A stretch of DNA of 64,000 nucleotides from the NCBI GenBank assembly GCA_976226885.1, contig OZ320315.1, positions 89,404,001 through 89,468,000 of the forward strand, written 5' to 3'. Source of the stretch: Iphione sp. A-MEVVRFRX5. Taxonomy: Eukaryota. This document shows, piece after piece, positions 2,758 through 62,919 of the stretch. Position 1 is the stretch's first letter. Each line of letters begins with the position of its first letter. The position numbers and the translations under genes are program-made. The notes beneath the pieces are model-generated. The model did no database searches. It saw nothing but the letters and a program-made list of their open reading frames with translations, and was not told the DNA's origin.

Positions 2758-3060
2758 ACCCTGGAGAGGGTCCGTGTCGACATCTCTGATGTTCTCTCAC
2801 CCTTGAGGGGGTGCCGGGAGAGGGTGGAGGCATCAACGGTGCCCTCTCTTATGTCTCTTACACACTGGAGAGGGTGGTGGGAGAGGTTGAAGGCATCAAC
2901 AGCGACTTTTCTGGTGTCTCTCACACCCCGGAGAGGGTGGTGGGAGAGGTTGGAGGCATCAAAGGCGACCTCTCTGATGTACCTCACACCCTGGAGAGGG
3001 TGGTTGGAGAGGTCGGAGGCATCAAAGGCGACCTCTCTGATGTTCCTCACACCCTGGAGG
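2758..3060. repeat. 60-bp minisatellite, about 5 copies, inside the MITE
   Basis: Unit approx. CACACCCTGGAGAGGGTGGTGGGAGAGGTTGGAGGCATCAAAGGCGACCTCTCTGATGTACCT; produces 20-aa periodic ORFs in three frames. Confidence 0.95.
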
Positions 3061-9942: not shown

Positions 9943-10136
9943 CATTACAACAAACAACCGCGTACCAGTGGAGACATTTATTACGAGAACACATAGGTAA
10001 ATAAACATTATCGATCAGTTCATCAACAGGTGTGTATTGTCAAGGTGTGTGTGCGCGGAGTGGCGAGCGTGAGCGGCGAGGGGTGAACATGTTTATCTGA
10101 GGTGTGTGTATGTGTGTGTGTGTCAGTGATTGCGCC
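9943..10136 (-). repeat. E1 repeat B2 (194 bp)
   Basis: Reads identical to 10265-10458; contains AATAAA on the minus strand (9977-9982). Confidence 0.97.
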
Positions 10137-10174
10137 CTACCGCGTAAAGCTTGTTGCTAGTTGGGTGGGTGGGC

Positions 10175-10268
10175 GGTAATCCAAACTGTCCGGCGGTTGA
10201 CCGCGAACTGAGTCACTGTTCGCGGCAGTGTAATGAAACCACGTGACCAACCGTCACGTGGGCCCATT
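10175..10268 (-). repeat. E1 repeat A2 (94 bp)
   Basis: Reads identical to 14691-14784. Confidence 0.97.
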
Positions 10269-10458
10269 ACAACAAACAACCGCGTACCAGTGGAGACATT
10301 TATTACGAGAACACATAGGTAAATAAACATTATCGATCAGTTCATCAACAGGTGTGTATTGTCAAGGTGTGTGTGCGCGGAGTGGCGAGCGTGAGCGGCG
10401 AGGGGTGAACATGTTTATCTGAGGTGTGTGTATGTGTGTGTGTGTCAGTGATTGCGCC
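10265..10458 (-). repeat. E1 repeat B1 (194 bp); shares CATT (10265-10268) with A2
   Basis: Reads identical to 9943-10136. Confidence 0.97.
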
Positions 10459-10470
10459 AAGGCAGTCTGT

Positions 10471-11364
10471 CTATCGTCTTTTAGTAAGATACCTCGCTGC
10501 TGCGCTCGAGCGCCAGTCCCCGCGAGCGACTATCTGCTGCCTCGGGACCCCTTGTGCCTGTGCGTGCCTGGCGCCCCCGTGCCGCAGCCCGTGAAGGGTG
10601 TGGCTATCGGGCGCCAGGCCCGCGGCCCCGACCGCGCGGCGCCAGGCCGGGCGCGCGTAGGACAGCGGAATGGGCGTCTGGGTGCCCTCGAAACACACAT
10701 AGGGCTGCTGGTGACTGGCTGACGGGTTCGCCTCAACCATGTCGTGGTGCGCGCGGAGTGGGCAGAGATCGTCGCCCGTGGCGCGGACCGTGATCTGCCG
10801 GGGGGTAGTGAAGAATTGCCGGGACTTAGACCACACAACGGTGAGGCGTAGCTCGTGCGGCCCGTCGGCGACGTGGGACCTCAGGAGCTGGCGGTACCTG
10901 TCGAAAGTGCTCACGTTCTGGGGGAGCAGGTTAGATTGGCGCAGCAGGGATGCGAACAGGATCAGGACCGCCGCGACCAGCGGGCGGGCCTGCGGGTCAC
11001 GCCTGAGGTGTGGAAGTATCAGGCGCAGCTTCTGTTCGGTGATAGGCAGGCGAGCTGTTGGCGCGGGTCTCGGAGTCATCTTAAGTGCTTGCAGCGCGTT
11101 GCGGACAAGAGGGGACCGCCAGGTGTCGACCGGTCTACCTTTATCCGCGAAGTGCGCCGTAAGGGCGCTGATGGTATTCGCCACACTCGCCGGGGTCGTC
11201 GTGTACGCCCTCTGCTCGATGAACGCGCAGAGGTGCTGGGGATCTGGCCTCCGATAGTCAACCCCGTACTTGGCGGAGAATGAAATGTAGGCGCGCAGGG
11301 CTGATGCCCTGTTCTTGAATGTACCTGGCCTCTTCGCGTGGCGTTGCCGTTCTTCTGCCGCCAC
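10471..11364 (-). CDS. E1 tyrosine recombinase (frame open from 11406; no AUG until about codon 96)
   Basis: Catalytic set SLLRQSN (R), WSKS (K), HGLRHGG (HxxR), RGDWRS (W), ARYL (Y). The track start is GTG. Confidence 0.95.
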   Translation of the reverse strand: MAAEERQRHAKRPGTFKNRASALRAYISFSAKYGVDYRRPDPQHLCAFIEQRAYTTTPASVANTISALTAHFADKGRPVDTWRSPLVRNALQALKMTPRPAPTARLPITEQKLRLILPHLRRDPQARPLVAAVLILFASLLRQSNLLPQNVSTFDRYRQLLRSHVADGPHELRLTVVWSKSRQFFTTPRQITVRATGDDLCPLRAHHDMVEANPSASHQQPYVCFEGTQTPIPLSYARPAWRRAVGAAGLAPDSHTLHGLRHGGARHAQAQGVPRQQIVARGDWRSSAAARYLTKRR

Positions 11365-11393
11365 CAGGAGGTCATTGTAGGCCGGGTCTGAAA

Positions 11394-13538
11394 TTATAGG
11401 TGGTATTTATAATCGTATGCCCAAGGTGGAACGTTGACGACTCGTAGGTTTTCGCTGTTGATGTATGACTGTGCTACGTTGTGGTGAGGGACTGACCGCG
11501 ACGCTCGGCTAAGTGCGTCGGGGATGATCATCTGGGCCCCGGGACGGTGCTCGGGTACCAGGAACGCGTGGTGGTGCTCAACATGGTACCAGATGGCTCT
11601 GGCGCAGGCTGCCAGTACGGGGTCCCGTGCGCGACCTGACGCTAGGACTTCGACTGTGGCGGCGTTGTCGCAGAGAAGCCTTACACGTTGGCCCACGTCA
11701 TCGTCTGTGATGAGGAGGCGGGCCGCGGCGAGGCAGTTTATTGCTTCCAATTGCGAAATGTGGTGACCCTCTGCGACGTCTTGTGGCCATTCGAAGCTGT
11801 AGCATGCGACGCCATCATGCGCCCCGGCACCATACAAGCAGGCGTCCGCTGCGATCGTCTTGTGGGGCGTGGCAGGCGGGAAGAATGATATGCCGTTGTG
11901 CGTCTCGGAGAAGTCGCGCAGCCAGCGCAGGTCCGCCCTAAAGTCTTGGTCGACCTCGATAAAGTCGGTGCCCTCTCGTAGCTTGCTCAGGATTCGCGCC
12001 ATAAACAACCTGGCGGCAGGAATCGCCTTCGCGATGTGGTTGATCTTGCCGACTATCGACTGCACTTGGCGCTTGGTCAGTTGCTGGTGGGTCATGGTGT
12101 CGCTGAACAATACTCTGTACTCGGCGAGCTTCGCTCGGGGTATCGCCAGGGTGGCTGTGATCGTGTCCACTCGTATGCCCAGCCAGGTGATTGCTGTTGC
12201 CGGGCCTTGGATCTTCTGTGTGGCGATTGTCAAGCCGAGGTCCTGGAGGAACGCAATGACGTGCTCGACTTGCTTCTTGGCCTGCGCGGCGTCGGGGGCC
12301 ACCAGCACGAGGTCATCCAAGTACATCAGTGCGTCAATGTGGTTCGTGTGTAGCTGGCGCAGGATGAACTCCGCCGCCTTCTGCATGACGGCGGCGCTCA
12401 AGCGGGCGCCAAACGGGAGGGCCGTGTCGATGTAGAATTTCCCGTCGACCTTCAGGCACAGCAGCGGCCAGTCAGCGGGGCACACTGAAAAGTGGCGGTA
12501 TGCCCGCTTGAGGTCAACCACCGCCATGCAGCAGGGAGGGTCGTAGTCTTGGATTCTTCGAACTAGGTCGGTGACTGTCGGGAGTGTGTGCGGGCGCTCT
12601 GCTCCATATATAACGCCCTTCTGCACGTACGCGTTGACTGCTCGGCCAGGCGGGTATGATAGGTCTACGATGACGCGTCGCGAGCCGTCTGCTTTGGGGC
12701 GTGTCATCAGCGGGGCAACCATGCACCACTCGTGGAACGGGGGCTGATCGTAGGGTCCCATAATTGCTCCGAGCCTAATCTCCTCTCTGATGTATTCGGC
12801 TATGGCTCGGGGGTGCGCCCGTGCCGAGGGGTGGTTAGTTGTGTCGGTACGTGAAACAGGGGGACCGGCGTAATGGATGGGAAAACCGTACCTTATGCCA
12901 TCCAGGATCAGCGTGTCATCGTCGTGGCCGGTCGCCGCATTGTCCCAGGCGCGATAGATTAAGGAGGTGTTGAGTGCCAGTCTGGCACCGAGGGCGTTGG
13001 GGTGGCCTAGCCTGGCCACGGTCCGGTAGGTGTTTTCGGCTCGCTGACCGCAGGCCGCTATCATGCGCGGCCATGTCGCTGCTCTGTGTTGTGCTAGTCT
13101 TGCGGAGAACCATGGCTGAGCTTCGCCCTCGGTTGGGTTCGACAGGTGCGTCGCGTTGGTGTATTGAGGGGCAGGGGAGGGTAGCGGTGAGCCGTAATCC
13201 GCGTAATCCTCTCCTGTCCCGCCGCACTCGCTGTCCTTGAGACCATTGTCTTTGGCCGGTGAGCTGGCGTGAGCGTTGTCGGGGGGCATTTGTAGGTCGT
13301 CGTCTTGGTCTGTTACATCATGGGCGGGCAAAGGCGTCTCGGGGGGCTGCCCGCTCGTTAATCCCTCGAGTGCGCGTTTTTTGGCTCGGTCCTTTCGTGG
13401 GTCTTCTCGCGTTGGTCTCTCTTGGGTCTCTCCTTGTTGTCTGGGCGTGAGGTCGTGGCCATTCTCGCCTTTCGTGCGCATTCGGTTGCTGAGTGCTGAC
13501 ATTCTCGGTTGCCTACGCCCATCCAGCACACTGCACAT
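11394..13538 (-). CDS. E1 pol: reverse transcriptase + RNase H (-1 frame relative to gag)
   Basis: VVDLKRAYRHF, ALPFG, YLDDL; RNase H AADAC/QLEAIN/LCDNA/PDALSR; pre-RT PNALGARL...GIRYGFPIHY domain typical of DIRS-order pol. Confidence 0.96.
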   Translation of the reverse strand: MCSVLDGRRQPRMSALSNRMRTKGENGHDLTPRQQGETQERPTREDPRKDRAKKRALEGLTSGQPPETPLPAHDVTDQDDDLQMPPDNAHASSPAKDNGLKDSECGGTGEDYADYGSPLPSPAPQYTNATHLSNPTEGEAQPWFSARLAQHRAATWPRMIAACGQRAENTYRTVARLGHPNALGARLALNTSLIYRAWDNAATGHDDDTLILDGIRYGFPIHYAGPPVSRTDTTNHPSARAHPRAIAEYIREEIRLGAIMGPYDQPPFHEWCMVAPLMTRPKADGSRRVIVDLSYPPGRAVNAYVQKGVIYGAERPHTLPTVTDLVRRIQDYDPPCCMAVVDLKRAYRHFSVCPADWPLLCLKVDGKFYIDTALPFGARLSAAVMQKAAEFILRQLHTNHIDALMYLDDLVLVAPDAAQAKKQVEHVIAFLQDLGLTIATQKIQGPATAITWLGIRVDTITATLAIPRAKLAEYRVLFSDTMTHQQLTKRQVQSIVGKINHIAKAIPAARLFMARILSKLREGTDFIEVDQDFRADLRWLRDFSETHNGISFFPPATPHKTIAADACLYGAGAHDGVACYSFEWPQDVAEGHHISQLEAINCLAAARLLITDDDVGQRVRLLCDNAATVEVLASGRARDPVLAACARAIWYHVEHHHAFLVPEHRPGAQMIIPDALSRASRSVPHHNVAQSYINSENLRVVNVPPWAYDYKYHL

Positions 13539-14671
13539 CGATGGTGAAACGTGGTACCTCCTTCACGATGCTTGTGCGCCTCTGGGCAAGTGGCCATGTT
13601 GTAGGCCAGGCAAGGGACCTCCGGGGGAACTGTCTCTTTCTGGCCTTTGCAGAGGGCGAGTTGTGTCCGCATCTGACTAATTACTGCCTCGTCCTTCCAC
13701 CTCAATGTTCCCTGATTAATCTGGTGGATAACTGTTAGCGACCAGCGCCTAACGTTTTTCCACCTGTGTGTCAGGGAATCCTGTAGTAGCTCTTCCGCGT
13801 GGCAGAGCTGGTACCAGAGCGTCGTCCTCGGGGGGCCCGACAGCCGAATCATCGCGATCAGTCCAATGGCATGTTCAATGGGAGACAAATCGTCAGGGGA
13901 CTCCCTATCTTTAATCTCTTCTGCGAGGTCGAATAGCGTCATGTACGGTTTCCAGAAGGGCACCATTTTCTCTTTTACCGGATCATACACTTGCTTACCT
14001 CGCGTTCGGCGAAATGAAGTGGTAGTCTCGGCCTGCATCGCTTTGTCGACGTACGCCATTGATTCGCGTGGGATGCGTCTGCGTCGGCGGGTGGAGGTTT
14101 CGTCCTCCGATGAGGACGTCCATTCGGAGAGGTCCGTGGAGTCGTCCTCGGACAGGGAGGGGGACGTGGTCGTGTGCCTGCGCCTTACGCGCCGAGAGCG
14201 TTTGTGTACTGCATGAACCGGGCTGCGGCGCTTCACTACTACCTTCTGCTTCGTGCGTCGTCTGCGGCCGGCGTTCTCCCTTTCGCGGCGAGTCTGGTCG
14301 CGCTGTCGGGTTTTCTTCGGTGTCTCGACGTCCCCTGGGTCTTCCGGGCCTTGTGGCACTGGATCGGTGTTGTTGTTTCCCTGCGGTGCTGGCTGGGGCT
14401 GCGGATCCTGCGGCGGAGCTGGATCTTGGTTTCCTTTGGGCTTCGGAGTGTCGTTCTTGCTCTTGCTCCTGCGGCGATCCTTCTTCTGGTGGAGGGCCAG
14501 GAGGATCTCGATGCCCGTCTCCAATCATGCGATCCGTTCCTCTAGCTGGGCGGCCGGTGCCGGGTCTCCGGGGGCCGGGTTCTCCGGCTGAGAACCGCCT
14601 TGGTCGCCGTTACCGCTGGGCCCCGGTACGGGGTCCTCGGGATTTCCTGGATTAGCGTTGTCCATAGACAT
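13358..14671 (-). CDS. E1 gag-like ORF1, interrupted by one in-frame TGA at 14525-14527
   Basis: ATG at 14671 gives MSMDNANPGNPEDP...QLEERIA*LETGIEILL in frame with track ORF 13358..14524 (TTG start); C-terminal Cys/His finger CLAYNMATC...HHRCAVC...HSATEC. Confidence 0.88.
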
Positions 14672-14690
14672 AGCGAGGGCAGGCCTGCAA

Positions 14691-14784
14691 GGTAATCCAA
14701 ACTGTCCGGCGGTTGACCGCGAACTGAGTCACTGTTCGCGGCAGTGTAATGAAACCACGTGACCAACCGTCACGTGGGCCCATT
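14691..14784 (-). repeat. E1 repeat A1 (5' end of element)
   Basis: Reads identical to 10175-10268. Confidence 0.97.
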
Positions 14785-14805: not shown

Positions 14806-14954
14806 NNNNNNNNNNNNNNNNNNNNNNNNNNNNNNNNNNNNNNNNNNNNNNNNNNNNNNNNNNNNNNNNNNNNNNNNNNNNNNNNNNNNNNNNNNNNNNN
14901 NNNNNNNNNNNNNNNNNNNNNNNNNNNNNNNNNNNNNNNNNNNNNNNNNNNNNN
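14806..14954. other. Assembly gap (149 N)
   Basis: Run of N starting 21 bp outside the E1 end. Confidence 1.
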
Positions 14955-34675: not shown

Positions 34676-35653
34676 CAACCCCAAAGAAGAAGAAAAAACT
34701 GAATCAAAATTAAGTTTATCCTCCAGAGATGGGGAGAGATAGCAAAACACAGCGTCACTCCTCCACCCACCTCTCTCTTTGATCACATGAAGAGGAACAC
34801 CTAACCTAGCCATATGAGAAGCACCTCCTCGTCTGAGCGAATGAGAAGTTAGTCTCCCCTCAACACCAGCTACCATACACAACCTCTTCAACTCCTTATT
34901 GAACCATGAATACTCCAAAAAACACAACTTTCCATCTTCAATAAAGGAGAAAATTGGGAGATTTTTCGACACTCTTACAAATGAAAAAAGTAGACCCAAC
35001 CAATGAACTAGGCAAAAAATTCTACTACTACTTGAAGACACAACTATATCCCTAGGGGATTCACCAAACTGATCAGTCTTCGACCTCCGAATATGAATAA
35101 TCACACGGTCAGCAAAAATCTCAATATCACTCCTCTTCAGCCCTGAATCATCCATAAATTGATTCTTCCTCAACAAACTACGGAAGCCAAATAGAATAGC
35201 ACACCAAAACACCAACTGCCTCACCTTAGAGAGGTCCAAAACGCCATAAATCTTAACCAAATCCGAGATGGAAAACCCTTTGGATTTCAAACTCTTGCCC
35301 ATATCAATCCTCTTCAACCCACTAATCATCCATTTTATATTAAAATCCTGAACATCTGGAGGGGAGAGAAAACGTTTCCTATGCTCAAACACCAGACCAC
35401 TCAAATAGTTTGAAACCGAGCTTGGGCGCATAACCTGAGATAAGTAAGCGCAATATAATCTCAATTGGAACTGACTACATGGATAAGCTGAGAAACAATA
35501 CTTCTTGCAGAAAGACAAATAAACTTCTTCTTGTCTCTTCCTCGTCCTCACGGTATTGTCAGAGTACGCCATCTCCCTCAACATGACCATTCTCGATATC
35601 AGGCTCCCAACCGGATCTGTAAGACAAGAGCACCTCCTTACAACAAGCTTCAT
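34670..35653 (-). CDS. E2 tyrosine recombinase
   Basis: SLLRKNQ (R), RSKTDQ (K), SHSLRRGGA (HxxR), RGGWRS (W), FCYL (Y); overlaps pol by 95 nt. Confidence 0.96.
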   Translation of the reverse strand: MKLVVRRCSCLTDPVGSLISRMVMLREMAYSDNTVRTRKRQEEVYLSFCKKYCFSAYPCSQFQLRLYCAYLSQVMRPSSVSNYLSGLVFEHRKRFLSPPDVQDFNIKWMISGLKRIDMGKSLKSKGFSISDLVKIYGVLDLSKVRQLVFWCAILFGFRSLLRKNQFMDDSGLKRSDIEIFADRVIIHIRRSKTDQFGESPRDIVVSSSSSRIFCLVHWLGLLFSFVRVSKNLPIFSFIEDGKLCFLEYSWFNKELKRLCMVAGVEGRLTSHSLRRGGASHMARLGVPLHVIKERGGWRSDAVFCYLSPSLEDKLNFDSVFSSSLGLA

Positions 35654-37544
35654 TCACCCACGACGTCCACCTCTCATCGTCAACAAAGAACTTATCATCA
35701 CGCCTCGACAAGACATCAGCTACCACGTTATCTTTCGTATTAATATACTCTGACGTGATTCTAATGTTGTAAATGGTGCAAACCCAAAAAATCTCCTTCA
35801 ACCACCAGAGACACATCTTGTTAGAGCTTCTTCCTGATCTCAGCATATACAACACCTGAGTATTGTCCACCATAAACAACACATTGCTATTCCTCCACAA
35901 GTCCTTCCACCTCTTCAGAGCAACAACCACCGGCCAAAGTTCGTAAACATTGATATTCCGCTCAATCAGGTCCATCAATGGTCTACTCTCACAATGGCTA
36001 CATCCAAAAACTTTCAAGGCACCAGACCAATCACCCAAAAACCAGTCGTTCTTATATGAACCACCAAAACCCTTAAACGAGGAATCGGTATAACAGACAT
36101 GCTCAACCAAACCTGGGTCAATAATTTTACCGACCCCATTGAACAATTTAGAGAACACCAACCACCAGTTCAGATCATCTAAGACCAAATCGCTCACTCC
36201 AACCTTTTTGTTGTTTTTGGGCAAGGACTCTACAAAATCATACATACTTCTACAAAAGGTGCGCCCGCCCAGAATGATTGTGGCGCAATGAGATAGGAAA
36301 CCAGCAATCTTCTCACCTTCTTTCCTGCAAATCTTTTTTGAAGAAGTAACCTTGGTCAACATATCCCTCATTTTATCTAACTTTCCTTCAGGGAGCCTCA
36401 TAGTCATCTTTGAACTGTCTATCTCAATGCCCAAGAAAATACATTTCCTGCTTGGTTCAGTTACTTTCTTCCAAGAAACGTCAAAGCCCAAAGACTCAAT
36501 AACACCTGTGAGAATCCTCCTGTTGCTCAGACACGAATCATACGATTCACCACACACAATGAAATCATCAAGATAATTCACTACCCTACTATCCGCTAAC
36601 TGAGCATATTCCTGCACAACAAAATTGGATAACTGGGTAAAGATGTAAGGCGCGCATTTCAAACCAAAGGTTAATGAGTTACTCACGAAGAACCTCCTAC
36701 GGCCATCCAGATACCACGAAAAACCCTGATATTTTCTGCAGTCTTCTCTAACACTCACTGACCTATAAGCATTACTTATGTCCACCACACTGAGAAAGTC
36801 ACCCTCTTTTAGAAACGTACAAACGTCACCAACTGATCTATATGAGAAGTCTTCATATAATCCCTCCATGAAGTAATTAATAGAAACTCCTACAGGCATT
36901 GAACAATCAGTTATTGGCCTCAGAGAGCCATCACTTTTTGGAACCCCCCCCATAGCATGCACACATTGGGGGACATCTTCCACTTCACTCACAAAACCCT
37001 GTTTGATTTCCTTCGATATTTTCTCCGACATCTCTGACAAAAAGGGCTCAACCTCGATAGACTTGTAATTCCTGCAATAGTACTTGCCTTCGAAGTTATC
37101 ATTAACAATCTGAAAACCGCTACAAACGCCATTCCAGATAAAAACACGCCTGCTGGGATCCATAAGTCCAAAACAACACCCTCTAAAAAATCTACAAGGC
37201 CTAAGTTTGGACATAACACCCCCAATAATGTGTTTACAATCACAGTTACCATCAAGACATGTCTTATAAATTCTGATAACGTTATTACTGTTAAACATCA
37301 CATATAACAGTTTGTCATCATCAACTATGGGTGATCCTGCGGGTACACCCCCTTCAATGTCAATCAACAACCATGCATTTCCAACATTATTTTCACAATG
37401 GTAAGCATATAAGAACATGTTAGCATCCTCAACTAAAAGATTTTTAGCATCGCTATACAAAGGTTCATCAAGCCTTTCTAAGCTAGGGAAAAACAACACG
37501 TCCAAGCCTACTGCGTCATTGTAACTTTGTTGTACGTTACATAG
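35559..37544 (-). CDS. E2 pol: RT + RNase H, in the same frame as gag and directly after its TGA
   Basis: VVDISNAYRSV, LTFG, YLDDF; RNase H YTDSS/VYELWP/MVDNT/VADVLSR; frame open from 37544; the track start is TTG and the first AUG is at 37418. Confidence 0.95.
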   Translation of the reverse strand, partial: LCNVQQSYNDAVGLDVLFFPSLERLDEPLYSDAKNLLVEDANMFLYAYHCENNVGNAWLLIDIEGGVPAGSPIVDDDKLLYVMFNSNNVIRIYKTCLDGNCDCKHIIGGVMSKLRPCRFFRGCCFGLMDPSRRVFIWNGVCSGFQIVNDNFEGKYYCRNYKSIEVEPFLSEMSEKISKEIKQGFVSEVEDVPQCVHAMGGVPKSDGSLRPITDCSMPVGVSINYFMEGLYEDFSYRSVGDVCTFLKEGDFLSVVDISNAYRSVSVREDCRKYQGFSWYLDGRRRFFVSNSLTFGLKCAPYIFTQLSNFVVQEYAQLADSRVVNYLDDFIVCGESYDSCLSNRRILTGVIESLGFDVSWKKVTEPSRKCIFLGIEIDSSKMTMRLPEGKLDKMRDMLTKVTSSKKICRKEGEKIAGFLSHCATIILGGRTFCRSMYDFVESLPKNNKKVGVSDLVLDDLNWWLVFSKLFNGVGKIIDPGLVEHVCYTDSSFKGFGGSYKNDWFLGDWSGALKVFGCSHCESRPLMDLIERNINVYELWPVVVALKRWKDLWRNSNVLFMVDNTQVLYMLRSGRSSNKMCLWWLKEIFWVCTIYNIRITSEYINTKDNVVADVLSRRDDKFFVDDERWTSWVNEACCKEVLLSYRSGWEPDIENGHVEGDGVL

Positions 37545-38495
37545 TCATTTCTTACCACCCTTTGAGTCCTTGGATTTATCTGCGTTGTTGACGTTCGCTG
37601 GGCACTCATAGGCTTTATGATCTGAACTTCCACACACAAGACACGCATGTTTAAAATTACAACCACTATCATGGCAAGTGCCATTGTTAAACCTATAGCA
37701 CACCTTATCTGAACGCTTGAAAACATCGCTATGTTTCTTACTCTTCGGCCGTTGACTACCACTCTTTTGCGTATTACCGCTCAGCATCATATCAAAACAA
37801 AAATGCGAACGAATAAGCTCGTCGTCACCGAACTTAAAGGCACTTGTACCTTTCTTTTCTGCTCTTTTCCTCATGTCCTTATCATAGTCAATGAAGGAGC
37901 TGTCCTTGTACACATTTTTGATACGTTTCTCCAGGAGGAATATCAAATGGTCCAAGTAGCCAGAAATGTCATGGCCCTTTTTCAGGTGTCGCTGCACCAA
38001 ACGCACGGAACCATACATCAACTGGTCAAAACTGTCAACACTTTTAACCTTGGCAGCCGCACGCACGTTAAACAATTTCTTCTTACCCTTGGACCTCCTC
38101 TTTTTCTGCTTATCATCATCATCCGAGTCTGAATAGCTCAAAGAAGACACGTCGTCCTGGCTTGTTGACATATCGCCACCACGGTCCTTGGAAACTAGGC
38201 CACTTCCGCCCGCATCCTTTGACAACGTAGAATTGACGCCACCATTAGCCAGAAGCAGAGATATCATGTCCTCGAGTTTGCCCATTCGTTGAGACAAACC
38301 ACCATTACCATTACCATTGTCATCTGCACCATTTGACACATCAACCATCTTCGATGAATCAGTCACAATTTCTGGAAAATCAGAAAACACACGAGACTCC
38401 ACCGAAGCACCACTACCATTTTCCACGGATAATCTGCATTTCTTGCCTACAGGAGCAGAATGTTTCCTGTTACATTTCGAACAATGTCTACCCAT
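37545..38495 (-). CDS. E2 gag-like ORF1
   Basis: N-terminal CSKCNRKH...C knuckle; C-terminal CYRFNNGTC...CNFKHACLVCGSSDH...C finger; likely ATG at 38495 (frame open to 38618 inside A1). Confidence 0.9.
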   Translation of the reverse strand: MGRHCSKCNRKHSAPVGKKCRLSVENGSGASVESRVFSDFPEIVTDSSKMVDVSNGADDNGNGNGGLSQRMGKLEDMISLLLANGGVNSTLSKDAGGSGLVSKDRGGDMSTSQDDVSSLSYSDSDDDDKQKKRRSKGKKKLFNVRAAAKVKSVDSFDQLMYGSVRLVQRHLKKGHDISGYLDHLIFLLEKRIKNVYKDSSFIDYDKDMRKRAEKKGTSAFKFGDDELIRSHFCFDMMLSGNTQKSGSQRPKSKKHSDVFKRSDKVCYRFNNGTCHDSGCNFKHACLVCGSSDHKAYECPANVNNADKSKDSKGGKK

Positions 38496-38567
38496 GTTGA
38501 AAGGCGAAATTACTGCCAGAAATCCGTTGGAATAGACAAGCACCTCGGAACCAGGTCCGTACCATTC

Positions 38568-38715
38568 AAAATTTTCAATCTGAATGACGGTTGTTATCCC
38601 TAGCATTCTATAGTACACACCTGTTACTTAGGACGTCACCCAGTGACTAAGGTGACGCTACCACACATCTGTAGTTGCTATATCAATACCCAAATAAATG
38701 CCTTATTTGGTATAT
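38568..38715 (-). repeat. E2 repeat A1 (5' end of element)
   Basis: Reads identical to 34477-34624. Confidence 0.97.
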
Positions 38716-44941: not shown

Positions 44942-45290
44942 GTGGGGAGTTAGCTCAGTGGTAAAGCACTGATCCACTGATTGAAAGGTTGCAGGTTCAA
45001 TCCCAAGCTTGGAACTCTCGATCAAGACCAGACAGATTTACTGTAGTCCCAACCCAGAGTGATCTCCAACTCATAAAAAGGCCATGGGTGTATAGGATTC
45101 TGTCCCTTATGCACAAAAAGACCCCAGAAAGCTATTCGAAGTACGAGTAGAGGGCAACCCCATGTATTCTGGTCTCTCAATTCTCAATAATAGATGGTAG
45201 TATTCTATCCCAGGAGGATATGGAAGTACCCTGTCTTGATGATAGGTGAATATATTCCTGGATAAAGATACAATGAAGTGAAATGAAATA
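44942..45290 (+). mobile_element. tRNA-derived SINE, copy 2
   Basis: A box TAGCTCAGTGG (44951), B box GGTTCAATCC (44994-45003); colinear with copy 1. Confidence 0.88.
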
Positions 45291-58467: not shown

Positions 58468-59160
58468 ATGGCGTACTGCAAACCGGTATTGCTGAATACC
58501 AAAATTCACTGTTTTACTGACTCGCATGGGCGAGACTTGGAATATGACATCTGGAAGCAAGGCCACCAAATCGAAGTGCATAGCTTCCCAGGGCGCCGAC
58601 TGTACCAAGTCTCGAGTAAAGCAACCCAAGCCTCATTTGAGGTAAAACCGAAGCTGACCATCATATGGGCAGGTAGCAACAATCTTACCAAGCTTGACAG
58701 GTATTACCAGCTACCAACCAAAGAAACTATCCGCCAGGTACACGTTGCCACAGACTCTACATATGATTTGTTTACTCGATTCCAAATTGAACTTTATGAT
58801 GCGGAAAACATGCTTCTACAATACCTAAAGCCTTGCACGTTCGCATTTGCGACAATTACTGGAACAGATATTTTGGTTTATAATTGCAACCAGGGGAATT
58901 ATCTAATAAACCCTAACATCAAAGATTATTATCAGTTCGTGATAGACGAGGCGATTTTCAAAATTAACAACGAAATAACCGCGGTGAACGCACGTAGAGA
59001 TATGCCAACACCGTGGATAGGTGGTATTATTCACTCGAGAAACAATCGCGTTAATAACCATAAATACTTCAAATTAATAGACGGATGTCATTTCAATGTA
59101 ACGGCAAGATATCAAGCCGCGAAGGAGGTGATCAAATTTGTCACCAAATGCGCTATGTAA
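58468..59160 (+). CDS. SGNH/GDSL esterase-like LINE ORF1 protein (230 aa)
   Basis: Blocks FTDSHGR (S), SFPG (G), WAGSNN (N), LIDGCHF (DxxH) in canonical order. Confidence 0.85.
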   Translation: MAYCKPVLLNTKIHCFTDSHGRDLEYDIWKQGHQIEVHSFPGRRLYQVSSKATQASFEVKPKLTIIWAGSNNLTKLDRYYQLPTKETIRQVHVATDSTYDLFTRFQIELYDAENMLLQYLKPCTFAFATITGTDILVYNCNQGNYLINPNIKDYYQFVIDEAIFKINNEITAVNARRDMPTPWIGGIIHSRNNRVNNHKYFKLIDGCHFNVTARYQAAKEVIKFVTKCAM

Positions 59161-60057: not shown

Positions 60058-62919
60058 ATGGCTAACCAAAAACAACTACAGGGCACCCTAAAAATATTTT
60101 ACATTAATATACAAAGTATACTCAACAAGCTAGACATTCTTAAAATACAGATATTGTCAGACAAGTATGACCTAATATTTTTAACTGAGACCTGGTTACA
60201 TAATGACATATTAGACGGACTATTAGATATTGAAGTGTACAACCTCGTGAGACTGGACAGAGCAACGAGAACAAAATCCATGAAAACCAAGAGAGGAGGA
60301 GGACTATGCATATATTACAAAACCAACTTACCAATTAATACGGCAATATATAGTAATCTATCTGGATCAACTGACGAATATGAATGTATGTGGATCAAAA
60401 TAGAAGGTCAAATAAACCATTGTATAGGTCTACTTTACCGTCCTCCCCAGGGCAAAGTGGAAGAGACATTAGTTTACCTATCAAATTGTCTATCGAACAT
60501 AAGTTCATCCGTTATTCTCATTGGAGATTTTAATATAGATTATTCAAAAAATGACAAGCGGAAACAAAGCTTGCTAGATTTTGAAGCTAAATTCCGGCTA
60601 TCCCAAATCATCAACATCCCAACACGTGGAAGCAATCGTGCCAAATCAATTATTGACCATGTGTACATCCGAACAAAATTAAAGGTATCAACTAGTATAA
60701 TTAAAAAGAATATCAGTGATCATCACGGGATAACCACAAAACTTACAATACCAGAGATGAAAAAATATGACCAAAAAGTTGCTGAATATAGACCATGGAA
60801 TGACAAAATTGCAATAAAATGCATCGAACGTATAAATAATGTATTGTGGAAAAAATTCTTTGAAGAGGATGATATAGAATTTCTGTGGCATTTTCTTCGA
60901 ATCACATTACAGGAAGCACTCGATCACATTTGCCCTAGACAGCGAAAAAGTATCAAGGAATACTCGATTCCATGGATCACAAGTGAGATAATAACAGTAA
61001 TAAACAGAAAACACAGGCACCTTAGGCAATACCATCAGTCTAAAGAACGGAAATACTTACTATTGGCAAATAAAACAAACAACGTTGTCAAATCTCTTAT
61101 AAGAAGAAATAAATCCAAATACTTCGAGGGAATGCTAAACAACAACCCAAGCCCTCGGGACTATTGGAAAAGGCTCAATCAACTATTTAAGACAAAGAAT
61201 AAAAAGGAAAATAAAATAGCAATTTGCGATGATACAGGGAATGAACTCACAGATTACAACTCCTGTAATTATATTAATACCTTTTTTGCGAGTATAGGAA
61301 GTAAGCAACTCGACGAAACGGAGGCTACTTACCTATCGGTTACCACCCCGTTTGAGAAGGAACCTAGTCAATTACCAATTAAATTAGCATCACAGGAGGA
61401 AATAAAAGAAATAATAAAAGGGATTAATACCAATAAACCATCTGGAATATATTGGTGTACAAATAAAATATTGGTAGACATGCTCGAGAACATACCGGAA
61501 CAATTAACATACCTGATAAATTGCTCACTGAGAAAAGGAAAAGTGCCTAACGACTGGAAAACAGGGATAATCACGCCAATTTTTAAAAAAGGGGACCGAA
61601 AACAAGCTGGTAATTATAGACCAATTACAATATTGCCCACATTTTCAAAGATTATCGAGCGAGTAGTACATACTAGAATATACCAACACCTTGAGGAACA
61701 CCATCTCTTACATACGCAACAATATGGGTTCAGAAAAGACAAGTCAACAGTAAAAGCTGGGGTAGCAGTAACTGACATTATCTATGAAAACCTAAATAAT
61801 GGTCTATTAACTGGCATAGTTCTAGTTGACTATGCAAAGGCATTCGACAGTATTGATCACAAAATAATCTTAAACAAACTAAATTGGTATGGTTTAGAAG
61901 CATATAGAAAATGGCTTGAAAGTTACTTATCAAATCGGACGCAGCAAACTAAAGCAAACAATTGTATCTCTGATCTGGCCACAGTAACAACAGGGGTACC
62001 CCAAGGAAGTATCTTGGGGCCCCTGTTGTTCCTACTGTACATAAATGACTCTTTTACTGCAATCAAGCGGTCTAACTGCATACTATACGCAGATGACACT
62101 ATACTGCTGGCAACGGGAGATAACCCAAAAAGCCTAAATGACATTTTGCAGAGCGACCTACAAAACCTACAAGAATGGTGCAAAATAAATCGTTTGAAAA
62201 TTAACCCTACCAAAACAGAAGCAATATTGTTCTGTAATAAGCACAGTAAGTACAAAAATGCCCATCTGGACTTGCATCTAGACAATAATTTGATCAAAAA
62301 TGTAGACTCTGTGAGATACTTAGGATTGAATTTAGATAAACACATGAGTCAGAAAGGACAAATAGAAGGAATAATCAAAAAGATCAAACCACTTGTTTTC
62401 ATGTTTAATAAAACCCGACCATACATGAACACGCAAACAGCTAGTCGAATTCTAAAGGCATTTATTTTACCCCATATCGAATATGGAGCAGTACTATTGA
62501 ACAAACAAGACAACCCCCTTTTCCAGAATCTGATGAGAATGTTCGACAGAGTAGTGAGGGTAAGTTTCAAGGATTGGACTAGTAACACATTAGACCTATA
62601 CAAGAAATTAAACTTACCAACTTTAGACCTACGCTGTGACTACCACCTAGCACTACTGGCAGTTAAAAGCGACTATCTTTGCGAAATTAAGACAACCAAT
62701 TCAGGGAAGACTAGAAATGACTTTAGACTTACGAAGAAAAGCCCTAAACCCAAGCGTGAAATATACAAACAGTCATGTAAATATAACTTGATTAGAGTAT
62801 GGAACGACCTACCTCTCTCACTAAAGCTTCGTCCTATTCCAAAAGACAATATACTGAAGAAACACTTGAAGCGTCACTTTATGTCCAAGATCCAAAAAGA
62901 GAACTGGAGGGTGCCCTGA
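60058..62919 (+). CDS. LINE ORF2: AP endonuclease + reverse transcriptase (953 aa, intact)
   Basis: APE: INIQS, LTETW, GGG, GDFN, IDH, SDH. RT: NYRPITIL, QYGFR, DYAKAFD, GVPQGSILGP, YADD. C-terminal WNDLP. Confidence 0.97.
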   Translation: MANQKQLQGTLKIFYINIQSILNKLDILKIQILSDKYDLIFLTETWLHNDILDGLLDIEVYNLVRLDRATRTKSMKTKRGGGLCIYYKTNLPINTAIYSNLSGSTDEYECMWIKIEGQINHCIGLLYRPPQGKVEETLVYLSNCLSNISSSVILIGDFNIDYSKNDKRKQSLLDFEAKFRLSQIINIPTRGSNRAKSIIDHVYIRTKLKVSTSIIKKNISDHHGITTKLTIPEMKKYDQKVAEYRPWNDKIAIKCIERINNVLWKKFFEEDDIEFLWHFLRITLQEALDHICPRQRKSIKEYSIPWITSEIITVINRKHRHLRQYHQSKERKYLLLANKTNNVVKSLIRRNKSKYFEGMLNNNPSPRDYWKRLNQLFKTKNKKENKIAICDDTGNELTDYNSCNYINTFFASIGSKQLDETEATYLSVTTPFEKEPSQLPIKLASQEEIKEIIKGINTNKPSGIYWCTNKILVDMLENIPEQLTYLINCSLRKGKVPNDWKTGIITPIFKKGDRKQAGNYRPITILPTFSKIIERVVHTRIYQHLEEHHLLHTQQYGFRKDKSTVKAGVAVTDIIYENLNNGLLTGIVLVDYAKAFDSIDHKIILNKLNWYGLEAYRKWLESYLSNRTQQTKANNCISDLATVTTGVPQGSILGPLLFLLYINDSFTAIKRSNCILYADDTILLATGDNPKSLNDILQSDLQNLQEWCKINRLKINPTKTEAILFCNKHSKYKNAHLDLHLDNNLIKNVDSVRYLGLNLDKHMSQKGQIEGIIKKIKPLVFMFNKTRPYMNTQTASRILKAFILPHIEYGAVLLNKQDNPLFQNLMRMFDRVVRVSFKDWTSNTLDLYKKLNLPTLDLRCDYHLALLAVKSDYLCEIKTTNSGKTRNDFRLTKKSPKPKREIYKQSCKYNLIRVWNDLPLSLKLRPIPKDNILKKHLKRHFMSKIQKENWRVP

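Follow-up and report, generated by a model that had tools for sequence, protein, structure and literature searches.

A Conserved Gag-to-Recombinase Intron as the Likely Route of Recombinase Expression in a Ngaro-Like Retrotransposon

E2, an intact Ngaro-like element on the minus strand of the window (the whole 64,000-nt stretch of Iphione sp. contig OZ320315.1 analyzed here), likely expresses its tyrosine recombinase (YR) from a spliced message in which an N-terminal segment of Gag (GagN) is fused in frame to YR, a reading to which we assign a probability of about 0.78. The DNA holds both splice sites in compatible phases with an in-frame junction, and the position, phase and nucleotides of the sites are conserved across very divergent elements whose recombinase frame generally lacks a start codon. 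The same intron also appears in RefSeq gene models. Splicing of E2 itself is inferred, with no RNA data for E2 or its closest clade.

Structure of E2 and Its Splice Pair

E2 has the gene order gag, RT/RNase H, YR and carries split direct repeats arranged as A1...B1-A2-B2, A1 and A2 being 100% identical and B1 and B2 86% identical. On this gene content and these repeats, and without a phylogeny, it is an intact Ngaro-like tyrosine-recombinase retrotransposon (DIRS order). Its features, and a second element in the window, E1, are as follows.

About 34400-38715, minus strand: E2, whole element, an intact Ngaro-like YR retroelement
38568..38715, minus strand: E2 terminal repeat A1, element 5' end
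34400..34698, minus strand: E2 3' repeats (B1 34620-34698, A2 34477-34624, B2 34400-34478)
37545..38495, minus strand: E2 gag, likely ATG 38495, stop TGA 37547-37545
35559..37544, minus strand: E2 RT/RNase H ORF (RVT_1), stop TGA 35561-35559
38087..38495, minus strand: E2 predicted exon 1 (GagN), 136 codons plus 1 base
38081..38090, minus strand: E2 5' splice site, AAGG/GTAAGA, last exon base 38087, phase 1
35617..38086, minus strand: E2 predicted intron, 2470 nt, taking in the core and stop of gag and nearly the whole RT/RNase H ORF
35617..35637, minus strand: E2 3' splice site, a pyrimidine-rich tract plus CAG, gtgctcttgtcttacag, which lines up with the acceptor in each of 20 other elements
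34670..35616, minus strand: E2 predicted exon 2 (tyrosine recombinase), 2 bases plus 314 codons plus stop
35651..35653, minus strand: ATG of the E2 YR frame, 12 codons upstream of the acceptor, a possible alternative start
9943..14784, minus strand: E1, a very divergent YR retroelement, 22-26% identical to E2 in amino acids

The gag start at ATG 38495 was picked by homology to the gag start of a related element, L002. From its N- to its C-terminus, E2 Gag contains a CxxCx3Hx7C motif, an acidic S/D tract, a basic KKRRSK tract, the gag core and a Cys/His knuckle; whole gag ORFs matched no Pfam family. The RT/RNase H ORF lies in the gag frame and begins directly behind the single TGA of gag. It encodes 648 aa, matches RVT_1 in Pfam (35559-37505, E 1.7e-16) and shares 37-38% identity with the L001 and L002 pol ORFs along its full length, including the RNase H part, right behind which it ends; YR comes at once. 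The last frame is identified as a tyrosine recombinase by a Pfam match to Phage_integrase (34670-35653, E 4e-9), and the H-x-x-R motif (HSLRRGG in E2) and the C-terminal Tyr are invariant across the YR alignment. E2 has neither a protease nor a DDE integrase, and it gave no Pfam match to a methyltransferase, though Pfam may model the DIRS methyltransferase domain poorly. The RT and YR frames overlap by 92 nt at the end of the RT ORF, which, unlike that of most relatives, extends 58 nt beyond the acceptor.

At the donor, tccaagG/GTAAGA (the slash marks the exon boundary), base 38087 is the first base of a gag codon and is preceded by ...YSDSDDDDKQKKRRSK. At the acceptor, cttgtcttacag/ATCCG (gtgctcttgtcttacag/ATCCGG), the AG occupies 35618-35617 and the exon opens at 35616 on the second base of a YR codon, so that this site too is in phase 1. 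The junction encodes D-P, with 16 codons in all preceding the A-Y-S-D-N-T of the YR core, and the predicted in-frame fusion from ATG 38495 comprises 136 aa, the junction D and 314 aa, or 451 aa. The idea that the acceptor tract serves to prime the plus strand was rejected, because the tract is pyrimidine-rich on the sense strand and lies mid-element.

E1 has the equivalent pair: a donor CGAG/GTAAGC with exon end 13999, an intron of 2611 nt, and an acceptor ataatttcag/ACCCG with exon start 11387, where D-P is followed by 17 codons before A-x4-T. A protein search with exon 2 of E1 YR found no match, leaving E1 as the sole representative of its clade. The first-pass annotation, made from sequence alone, had claimed for E2 a phase-1 acceptor with exon start 35616, giving D-P 16-17 codons before the YR core, a phase-1 donor with exon end 38087 behind the acidic tract and KKRRSK, a 2470-nt intron, a fusion of ~451 aa and a YR start codon of its own at 35653, together with an equivalent splice pair in E1; on the minus-strand sequence each of these claims held.

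Conservation of the Splice Sites in Related Elements

The simplest objection is that the sites match by chance, since GGT-AAG arises readily in a Lys/Gly-rich gag and an AG can be expected in any stretch of 20 codons. In support of this view, E2 gag contains two further phase-1 GTAAG sites (GT starting at 37741 and 37555), and the probabilities obtained from E2 alone are only about 0.01-0.04. With a rough splice-site matrix based on generic metazoan frequencies, the chance of an equal or better site in the relevant slot is ~0.04 for the acceptor and ~0.013 for the donor. Both sites are weaker than those of most relatives: the donor, which has G at -2, ranks 6th of 378 GT sites and the acceptor 9th of 308 AG sites. 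Taken singly, the E2 sites are only modestly improbable by chance; it is the comparative evidence that is strong.

Donors were compared in the 10 gag genes that could be examined (E1, E2, L002, L005, L006, L007, L011, L012, L013, and L016), and acceptors at 16 RT-to-YR junctions, metagenomic or from the window, to which five RefSeq models add a further five for a total of 21. All 10 gag genes carry N/GTAAG in phase 1 at the homologous position, which adjoins the conserved gag core on its N-terminal side and leaves 173-213 residues to the end of Gag; with the RefSeq models, a phase-1 GT donor is found in 15 of 15. The donor is formed by Gly GGT plus Lys AAG in nine of the 10 genes and by Ser AGT plus AAG in L002, where the GT has thus been retained despite the change of residue. 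Even if Gly-Lys is assumed to be conserved, the chance of GGT-AAG in eight elements, given the codon usage of each, is ~6.5e-8. A pyrimidine-rich tract plus YAG in phase 1 lies at the aligned YR start in 16 of 16 junctions (21 of 21 with the RefSeq models); the 16 predicted exon-2 starts agree within a few alignment columns, and in 13 of them the acceptor falls 6-65 nt past the RT stop. An in-frame fusion is predicted in all nine complete elements, with introns of 2283-3564 nt.

Under the same matrix, the acceptor is within the top 9 of 100-400 AG sites at 14 of 16 loci, and the donor within the top 7 of about 200-700 GT sites at nine of 10 loci, ranking first at five. The combined chance across related elements is ~3e-13 for the 16 acceptors and ~7e-14 for the 10 donors, values that assume independence and exaggerate it because the elements are kin. 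Against the chance explanation stand 15 donors and 21 acceptors that keep the same position, phase and nucleotides across elements with 20-40% protein identity, and we regard that explanation as all but excluded. The first-pass annotation had itself cautioned that GGT/AGT-AAG codons create donors by chance. The extra sites at 37741 and 37555 are real, and they were dropped as donors because they are not at the conserved position; for 38087, which alone sits at the conserved place, the worry is answered by position and codon usage. That annotation had also specified what would refute its claim of a conserved GagN-YR splice fusion, namely an acceptor motif that is not enriched at the YR starts of relatives. 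The opposite was obtained, and the claim is supported by 21/21 acceptors, 15/15 donors and the five RefSeq models, in the absence of E2 RNA.

A second possibility is that YR is made from unspliced RNA as an extension of RT, by frameshifting or stop readthrough, and that the splice-like motifs are incidental. Ribosomal frameshifting is the published proposal for Ngaro YR expression (Poulter and Butler, 2015, quoted in PMC13003380), the 92-nt YR/RT overlap of E2 is compatible with it, and in L002, L013, and L014 RT and YR share a frame, with one stop standing between them. Against it, the RT-to-YR frame relation is 0, +1 or +2 among elements, with overlaps or gaps, so that the constant (-1) relation with overlap does not hold and no single recoding mechanism fits, whereas splicing fits all. 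In L005, L011, and L019, 13-37 nt separate the RT stop codon from the opening of the YR frame, and no overlap is therefore available for shifting. RT-YR extension also leaves unexplained the fixed-phase pyrimidine tract and YAG at every junction, the invariant gag GTAAG and the two-exon RefSeq models. We consider it unlikely.

The third possibility, also unlikely in our view, is that the E2 recombinase has its own start, either ATG 35653 or a Met just before the core, used by an internally initiated transcript or by translational reinitiation, with splicing absent or irrelevant in E2. In its favor, the YR frame of E2 has an ATG 12 codons before the acceptor, and a Met conserved in the clade follows the acceptor by 9-15 codons in E2, L001, and L002; cap-independent or internal initiation is conceivable. 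Against it, no in-frame ATG occurs from the upstream stop to 75 nt beyond the acceptor in 11 of the 16 junctions, and the YR frame of E1 has none before the core. ATG 35653 lies ~3 kb downstream of the gag AUG with many AUGs between, an obstacle inferred from standard scanning, and in E2 neither splice site has departed from its conserved position or phase.

Two-Exon Gene Models and the Search for RNA Evidence

The spliced GagN-YR arrangement is also found in five RefSeq models, listed here by accession, each a two-exon GagN-YR gene.

XP_077986280.1: Glandiceps talaboti (acorn worm)
XP_066298120.1: Branchiostoma lanceolatum (amphioxus)
XP_035659582.1: B. floridae
XP_019639177.1: B. belcheri
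XP_078682739.1: Branchiostoma hybrid

All five consist of exactly two exons joined by a GT-AG intron running from phase 1 to phase 1, and in each the intron encloses the gag core and the RT ORF, so that architecture, phases and intron content are those predicted for E2; whether these introns have read support has not been established. The N-terminal Cys/His motif of E2 recurs in XP_035659582.1 and XP_019639177.1, and in the former an acidic and then a basic tract precede the junction, as in E2. The models differ from E2 in that their YR shares only about 25-30% identity with the E2 YR, and they are labelled as host genes, "integrase/recombinase xerD homolog" or "uncharacterized protein LOC...", with no mention of a retrotransposon.

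Direct RNA evidence was not obtained. The 90% clusters of the RefSeq fusions contained no Logan transcriptome-derived members, and the protein collections searched yielded no fusion protein derived from a transcriptome assembly. A word-based protein search with E2 YR gave matches of ≤32% identity, none of fusion length, and yielded L001 and L002 and no annotated kin; viral contigs scanned with the RT alignment gave no match. Two long YR proteins from JGI contigs (P0196 and P0204), considered as intronless fusions, proved to be an RT C-terminus read into the YR frame.

Proposed Expression of the Recombinase

In the expression scheme that we favor, E2 would produce two kinds of RNA. Unspliced RNA would be translated into Gag, and ribosomes that read through the one in-frame UGA, which precedes CUA, would make Gag-RT/RNase H. 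Part of the RNA would be spliced from the gag donor at 38087 to the acceptor at 35616, deleting the gag core and RT/RNase H, and this subgenomic message would be translated from the gag AUG into the 451-aa protein, in which 136 Gag N-terminal residues bearing the Cys/His motif, the acidic tract and the basic KKRRSK tract precede the recombinase. Since E2 has its own ATG at 35653, an alternative route is not excluded.

We infer that the Gag-derived N-terminus does more than provide a start codon, though no function has been shown. GagN may target or package the enzyme in the implied Gag-recombinase fusion, possibly by nuclear import via the basic tract or by co-assembly with Gag through their shared N-terminal segments. 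A bolder reading would hold jointly that gag-to-YR splicing is ancestral and general in animal Ngaro-like elements, and perhaps in other elements of the DIRS order, that it supersedes the frameshift model, and that GagN is functional, its Cys/His motif, coiled-coil-like segment and basic tract bringing the recombinase into the Gag/cDNA complex and the nucleus, by analogy with the delivery of integrase to retroviral particles by Gag-Pol. We offer this combined claim tentatively and place it just short of even odds.

The finding is of real interest for transposon biology. How YR is expressed has been an open point in tyrosine-recombinase retrotransposons, in which its ORF is often without a start codon. 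Frameshifting is invoked in reviews with no evidence behind it, and a conserved intron is a concrete and directly testable answer. It accounts for the "xerD homolog" genes, interrupted by an intron of 2-3 kb, that pipelines annotate in invertebrates, suggests an annotation rule (GTAAG in phase 1 ahead of the gag core plus YAG in phase 1 behind the RT stop), and would extend to the DIRS order the retrovirus-like retention of an intron in an RNA-replicated genome.

Comparison With Known Systems

E2 shares its gene order and A1...B1-A2-B2 repeats with Ngaro-type YR retrotransposons of the DIRS order. In the literature consulted on these elements YR is said to be reached by ribosomal frameshifting or overlapping ORFs, whereas for E2 and its kin a conserved intron is better supported. 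The literature searched made no mention of native splicing in elements of the DIRS, Ngaro or PAT type, and Gag-YR splicing in such elements has probably not been described, with the reservation that an earlier remark in Goodwin and Poulter (2004) or Poulter and Butler (2015) is not excluded.

A further likeness is to retroviral subgenomic env mRNA, especially that of avian sarcoma/leukosis viruses, whose donor lies inside gag and which fuses the first few gag codons to env. Both systems place the donor in gag coding sequence and the acceptor just before the downstream gene, and in both, as proposed for E2, a single transcript has two uses, the spliced message keeps the gag AUG as its start and unspliced copies remain the genome. 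They differ in that E2-type elements carry over 61-319 Gag residues and the avian viruses six, that the downstream gene is an integration enzyme and not an envelope, and that the intron removes pol and not gag-pol. Foamy-virus pol and copia gag are likewise made from spliced messages, and there too splicing, not recoding, sets the ratio of structural to enzymatic protein; other genes are involved, however, and neither system yields a Gag-enzyme fusion through the splice.

Organization of the E2 and E1 Retroelements

E2, the Ngaro-like tyrosine recombinase (YR) retroelement that is our main subject, has its repeats and three ORFs arranged in the Ngaro-type layout, and its 648-aa pol ORF seems to leave no space for a methyltransferase domain. 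E1, a second YR retroelement, shares this layout, with only 22-26% identity between the proteins of the two.

Features of E2 and E1 (window positions)
About 34400-38715, minus: E2, 40% G+C, three ORFs
37545-38618, minus: E2 gag ORF
35559-37505, minus: E2 RT/RNase H ORF
34670-35653, minus: E2 YR ORF
38568-38715 / 34477-34624: E2 split direct repeats A1 / A2, 100% identity
34620-34698 / 34400-34478: E2 split direct repeats B1 / B2, 86% identity
9943-14784, minus: E1, 60% G+C, layout as in E2

The ∼60% G+C of E1 stands against ∼40% in the surrounding region, and an assembly gap (N run 14806-14954) adjoins the element. No relatives of its YR were found in a word-based protein search, and E1 is the sole representative of its clade. 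The E1 gag frame opens at ATG 14671-14669, meets an in-frame TGA 48 codons on (14527-14525) and then resumes; this TGA could be either a nonsense change in this copy or a second readthrough site. Despite it, the terminal repeats are 100% identical.

Elsewhere in the window, a 953-aa ORF (60058-62919, plus strand) with apurinic-type endonuclease and reverse transcriptase domains is probably the intact ORF2 of a LINE-like non-LTR retrotransposon; the ORF beside it (58468-59160) had no family match. On either side of E2, ∼12 kb apart, lie inverted-repeat arms (32903-33195 and 44942-45235), each made up of two adjacent segments of 127 and 165 nt that are 87-89% complementary, and E2 may lie within a larger element with terminal inverted repeats. 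Tandem arrays with a 63-nt period occur at 2793-3044 and 29178-29355.

A Predicted Splice Pair in E2 and E1

The first-pass annotation had proposed that a phase-1 intron joins the N-terminal part of Gag (GagN) to YR in both elements, and re-reading the minus strand confirmed each of the sequence features it described. The E2 donor, tccaagG/GTAAGA (slash, exon boundary), lies downstream of YSDSDDDDKQKKRRSK and makes the last exon base, 38087, the first base of a gag codon; with the acceptor, gtgctcttgtcttacag/ATCCGG, the first exon base, 35616, is the second base of a YR codon. The predicted 2470-nt intron would yield a fusion of 136 + 1 + 314 = 451 residues from ATG 38495, with the junction reading ...KKRRSK-D-PVGSLISRMVMLREMAYSDNT. 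The equivalent E1 pair (donor CGAG/GTAAGC, exon end 13999; acceptor ataatttcag/ACCCG, exon start 11387) also gives D-P at the junction, and BLASTP pairs RRSK-GKK of E2 with RRTR-GKQ of E1. The RT ORF of E2 extends 58 nt beyond the acceptor (35559-35616), while in most relatives the acceptor follows the RT stop; aligned with L001 and L002, contigs of distant relatives, the homologous RT end in E2 would fall just upstream of the acceptor.

On the sense strand, a rough generic splice matrix built on approximate frequencies put the E2 donor 6th among 378 GT sites and its acceptor 9th among 308 AG sites. Equally good sites would occur by chance in the relevant slots with probabilities of ∼0.013 and ∼0.04, respectively. 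Taken alone, the E2 pair is thus only modestly beyond chance, and the case depends on comparison with relatives.

Conservation of Acceptor and Donor Among Relatives

Searching with the E2 YR recovered only distant kin (≤32% identity), whose contigs, L001 and L002, are YR retroelements. Loci L003-L020 came from scanning an RT alignment against metagenome contigs, with RT and YR frames placed by HMM searches. In all 16 RT-to-YR junctions (E1, E2, L001, L002, L005-L015, and L019), a phase-1 YAG closes a pyrimidine-rich tract (in L005, gtgttttttctctgttttcag/AA) 13-20 codons before the conserved YR start A-Y-A-x-G-T, and in the protein alignment the starts predicted for exon 2 are no more than a few columns apart. 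For 13 of these junctions, the acceptor sits in a short spacer, 6-65 nt beyond the RT stop codon. Eleven have no in-frame ATG from the upstream stop to 75 nt past the acceptor; lacking a start codon, these recombinase frames could not be translated alone by ordinary AUG initiation.

All 10 available gag genes (E1, E2, L002, L005, L006, L007, L011, L012, L013, and L016) carry a phase-1 N/GTAAG at the same position, directly upstream of the conserved core G-K...S-G-R-D/E-A-K...W-P, with the C-terminus 173-213 residues away. GTAAG occurs only ∼1 per kb in these loci, and the conserved donor is the sole GTAAG of gag in half of the genes; E2 gag has two further phase-1 GTAAG sites, as the first-pass annotation had cautioned. 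The donor codons are Gly GGT and Lys AAG in nine genes and Ser AGT and Lys AAG in L002, which retains GT despite the changed residue, indicating nucleotide rather than protein constraint. If Gly and Lys codons are drawn according to the usage of each element (L016 excluded for too few codons), GGT-AAG in all eight elements has a chance probability of ∼6.5e-8, even if the Gly-Lys dipeptide is conserved. Combined chance levels are ∼3e-13 for acceptors and ∼7e-14 for donors; both assume independence, which makes the evidence look stronger than it is since some elements are related. All nine complete elements yield an in-frame GagN-YR fusion, with introns of 2283-3564 nt.

Two other routes to YR were considered. 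In the view put forward in the review by Poulter and Butler (2015), quoted in PMC13003380, the YR ORF of Ngaro lies in the −1 frame, overlapping the end of RT/RH, and ribosomes probably gain access to it through programmed frameshifting; other papers describe only overlapping or frameshifted ORFs. Relative to RT, the YR frame of our elements is shifted by 0, 1 or 2, and in several a gap takes the place of the overlap, so frameshifting from RT into YR cannot be the common mechanism. An alternative YR start codon remains possible in the E2/L001/L002 clade, where a Met is conserved shortly downstream of the acceptor; the E2 YR frame has its own ATG at 35653, a second caveat of the first-pass annotation that held.

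Gene Models With the Same Intron

A search with the L006 YR, together with a profile search that covered 1.84 billion representative proteins, found YR proteins extended at the N-terminus by 80-440 residues; RefSeq models from Branchiostoma species and the acorn worm Glandiceps talaboti make up nearly all of them. Five loci were fetched and their exon structures solved via exact translation.

RefSeq models of YR proteins with N-terminal extensions
XP_077986280.1: Glandiceps talaboti (L021)
XP_066298120.1: Branchiostoma lanceolatum (L022)
XP_035659582.1: B. floridae (L025)
XP_019639177.1: B. belcheri (L026)
XP_078682739.1: Branchiostoma hybrid (L027)

All five have exactly two exons joined GT-AG, phase 1 to phase 1, with GTAAG, GTAAT or GTGAG donors. 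Exon 1 is the N-terminal portion of the gag ORF, and the 2204-3291-nt intron contains the gag core and the RT/RNase H ORF. That a pipeline skipped 2-3 kb of open frame suggests, by inference, that it had RNA evidence for the intron. The B. floridae protein has a C-x2-C...H...C motif at its start and its exon 1 closes with SDDSRSRSTKRRRRRA, resembling MGRHCSKCNRKHSAPVGKKC and SDSDDDDKQKKRRSK of E2.

An N-terminal Gag Cys/His motif, different from the C-terminal gag knuckle, reads C-x2-C-x3-H-x7-C in E2 (38436-38495) and L002 (355-420); L013 and a pair of amphioxus models (P0176 and P0181) have the form C-x2-C-x6-H-x8-C. Judged from sequence alone, it would occur in Gag and the fusion alike. A 544-aa ORF in L023 (960-2594; JGI 3300024581) was rejected as a GagN fusion: it joins a C-terminal RT/RNase H fragment continuously to a full YR and is a rearranged or deleted copy.

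Proposed Expression Strategy

The comparative evidence is strong and the gene models are independent, and both support the conserved GagN-YR fusion put forward in the first-pass annotation; we consider a spliced GagN-YR message likely, RNA support being absent both for E2 and for its clade. Unspliced RNA would serve as genome and as message for Gag, and probably also for Gag-RT/RNase H. Gag and pol share a frame with a single intervening TGA in seven of the nine complete elements (E2, L002, L005, L006, L007, L011, and L012), and the bases right after the TGA are CTA(G), CTT or CAA (in E2, TGA CTA TGT, with the TGA at 37545-37547). A TGA so followed is in a readthrough-favoring context. Gag-Pol synthesis by stop-codon readthrough in these seven is a probable inference from sequence; E1 is an exception, its gag and pol overlapping by 205 nt in different frames. 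Spliced RNA would encode GagN-YR, with translation beginning at the gag AUG. The GagN part may supply the start codon, its basic tract may act as a nuclear signal, and its Cys/His motif and coiled-coil-like segment may serve association with Gag, all of these roles being inferred purely from sequence.

Native splicing in such elements is not mentioned in the literature searched, which did not cover two key sources, and an earlier mention is possible. Apparently undescribed so far in this class of elements, a spliced subgenomic message is itself a known strategy.
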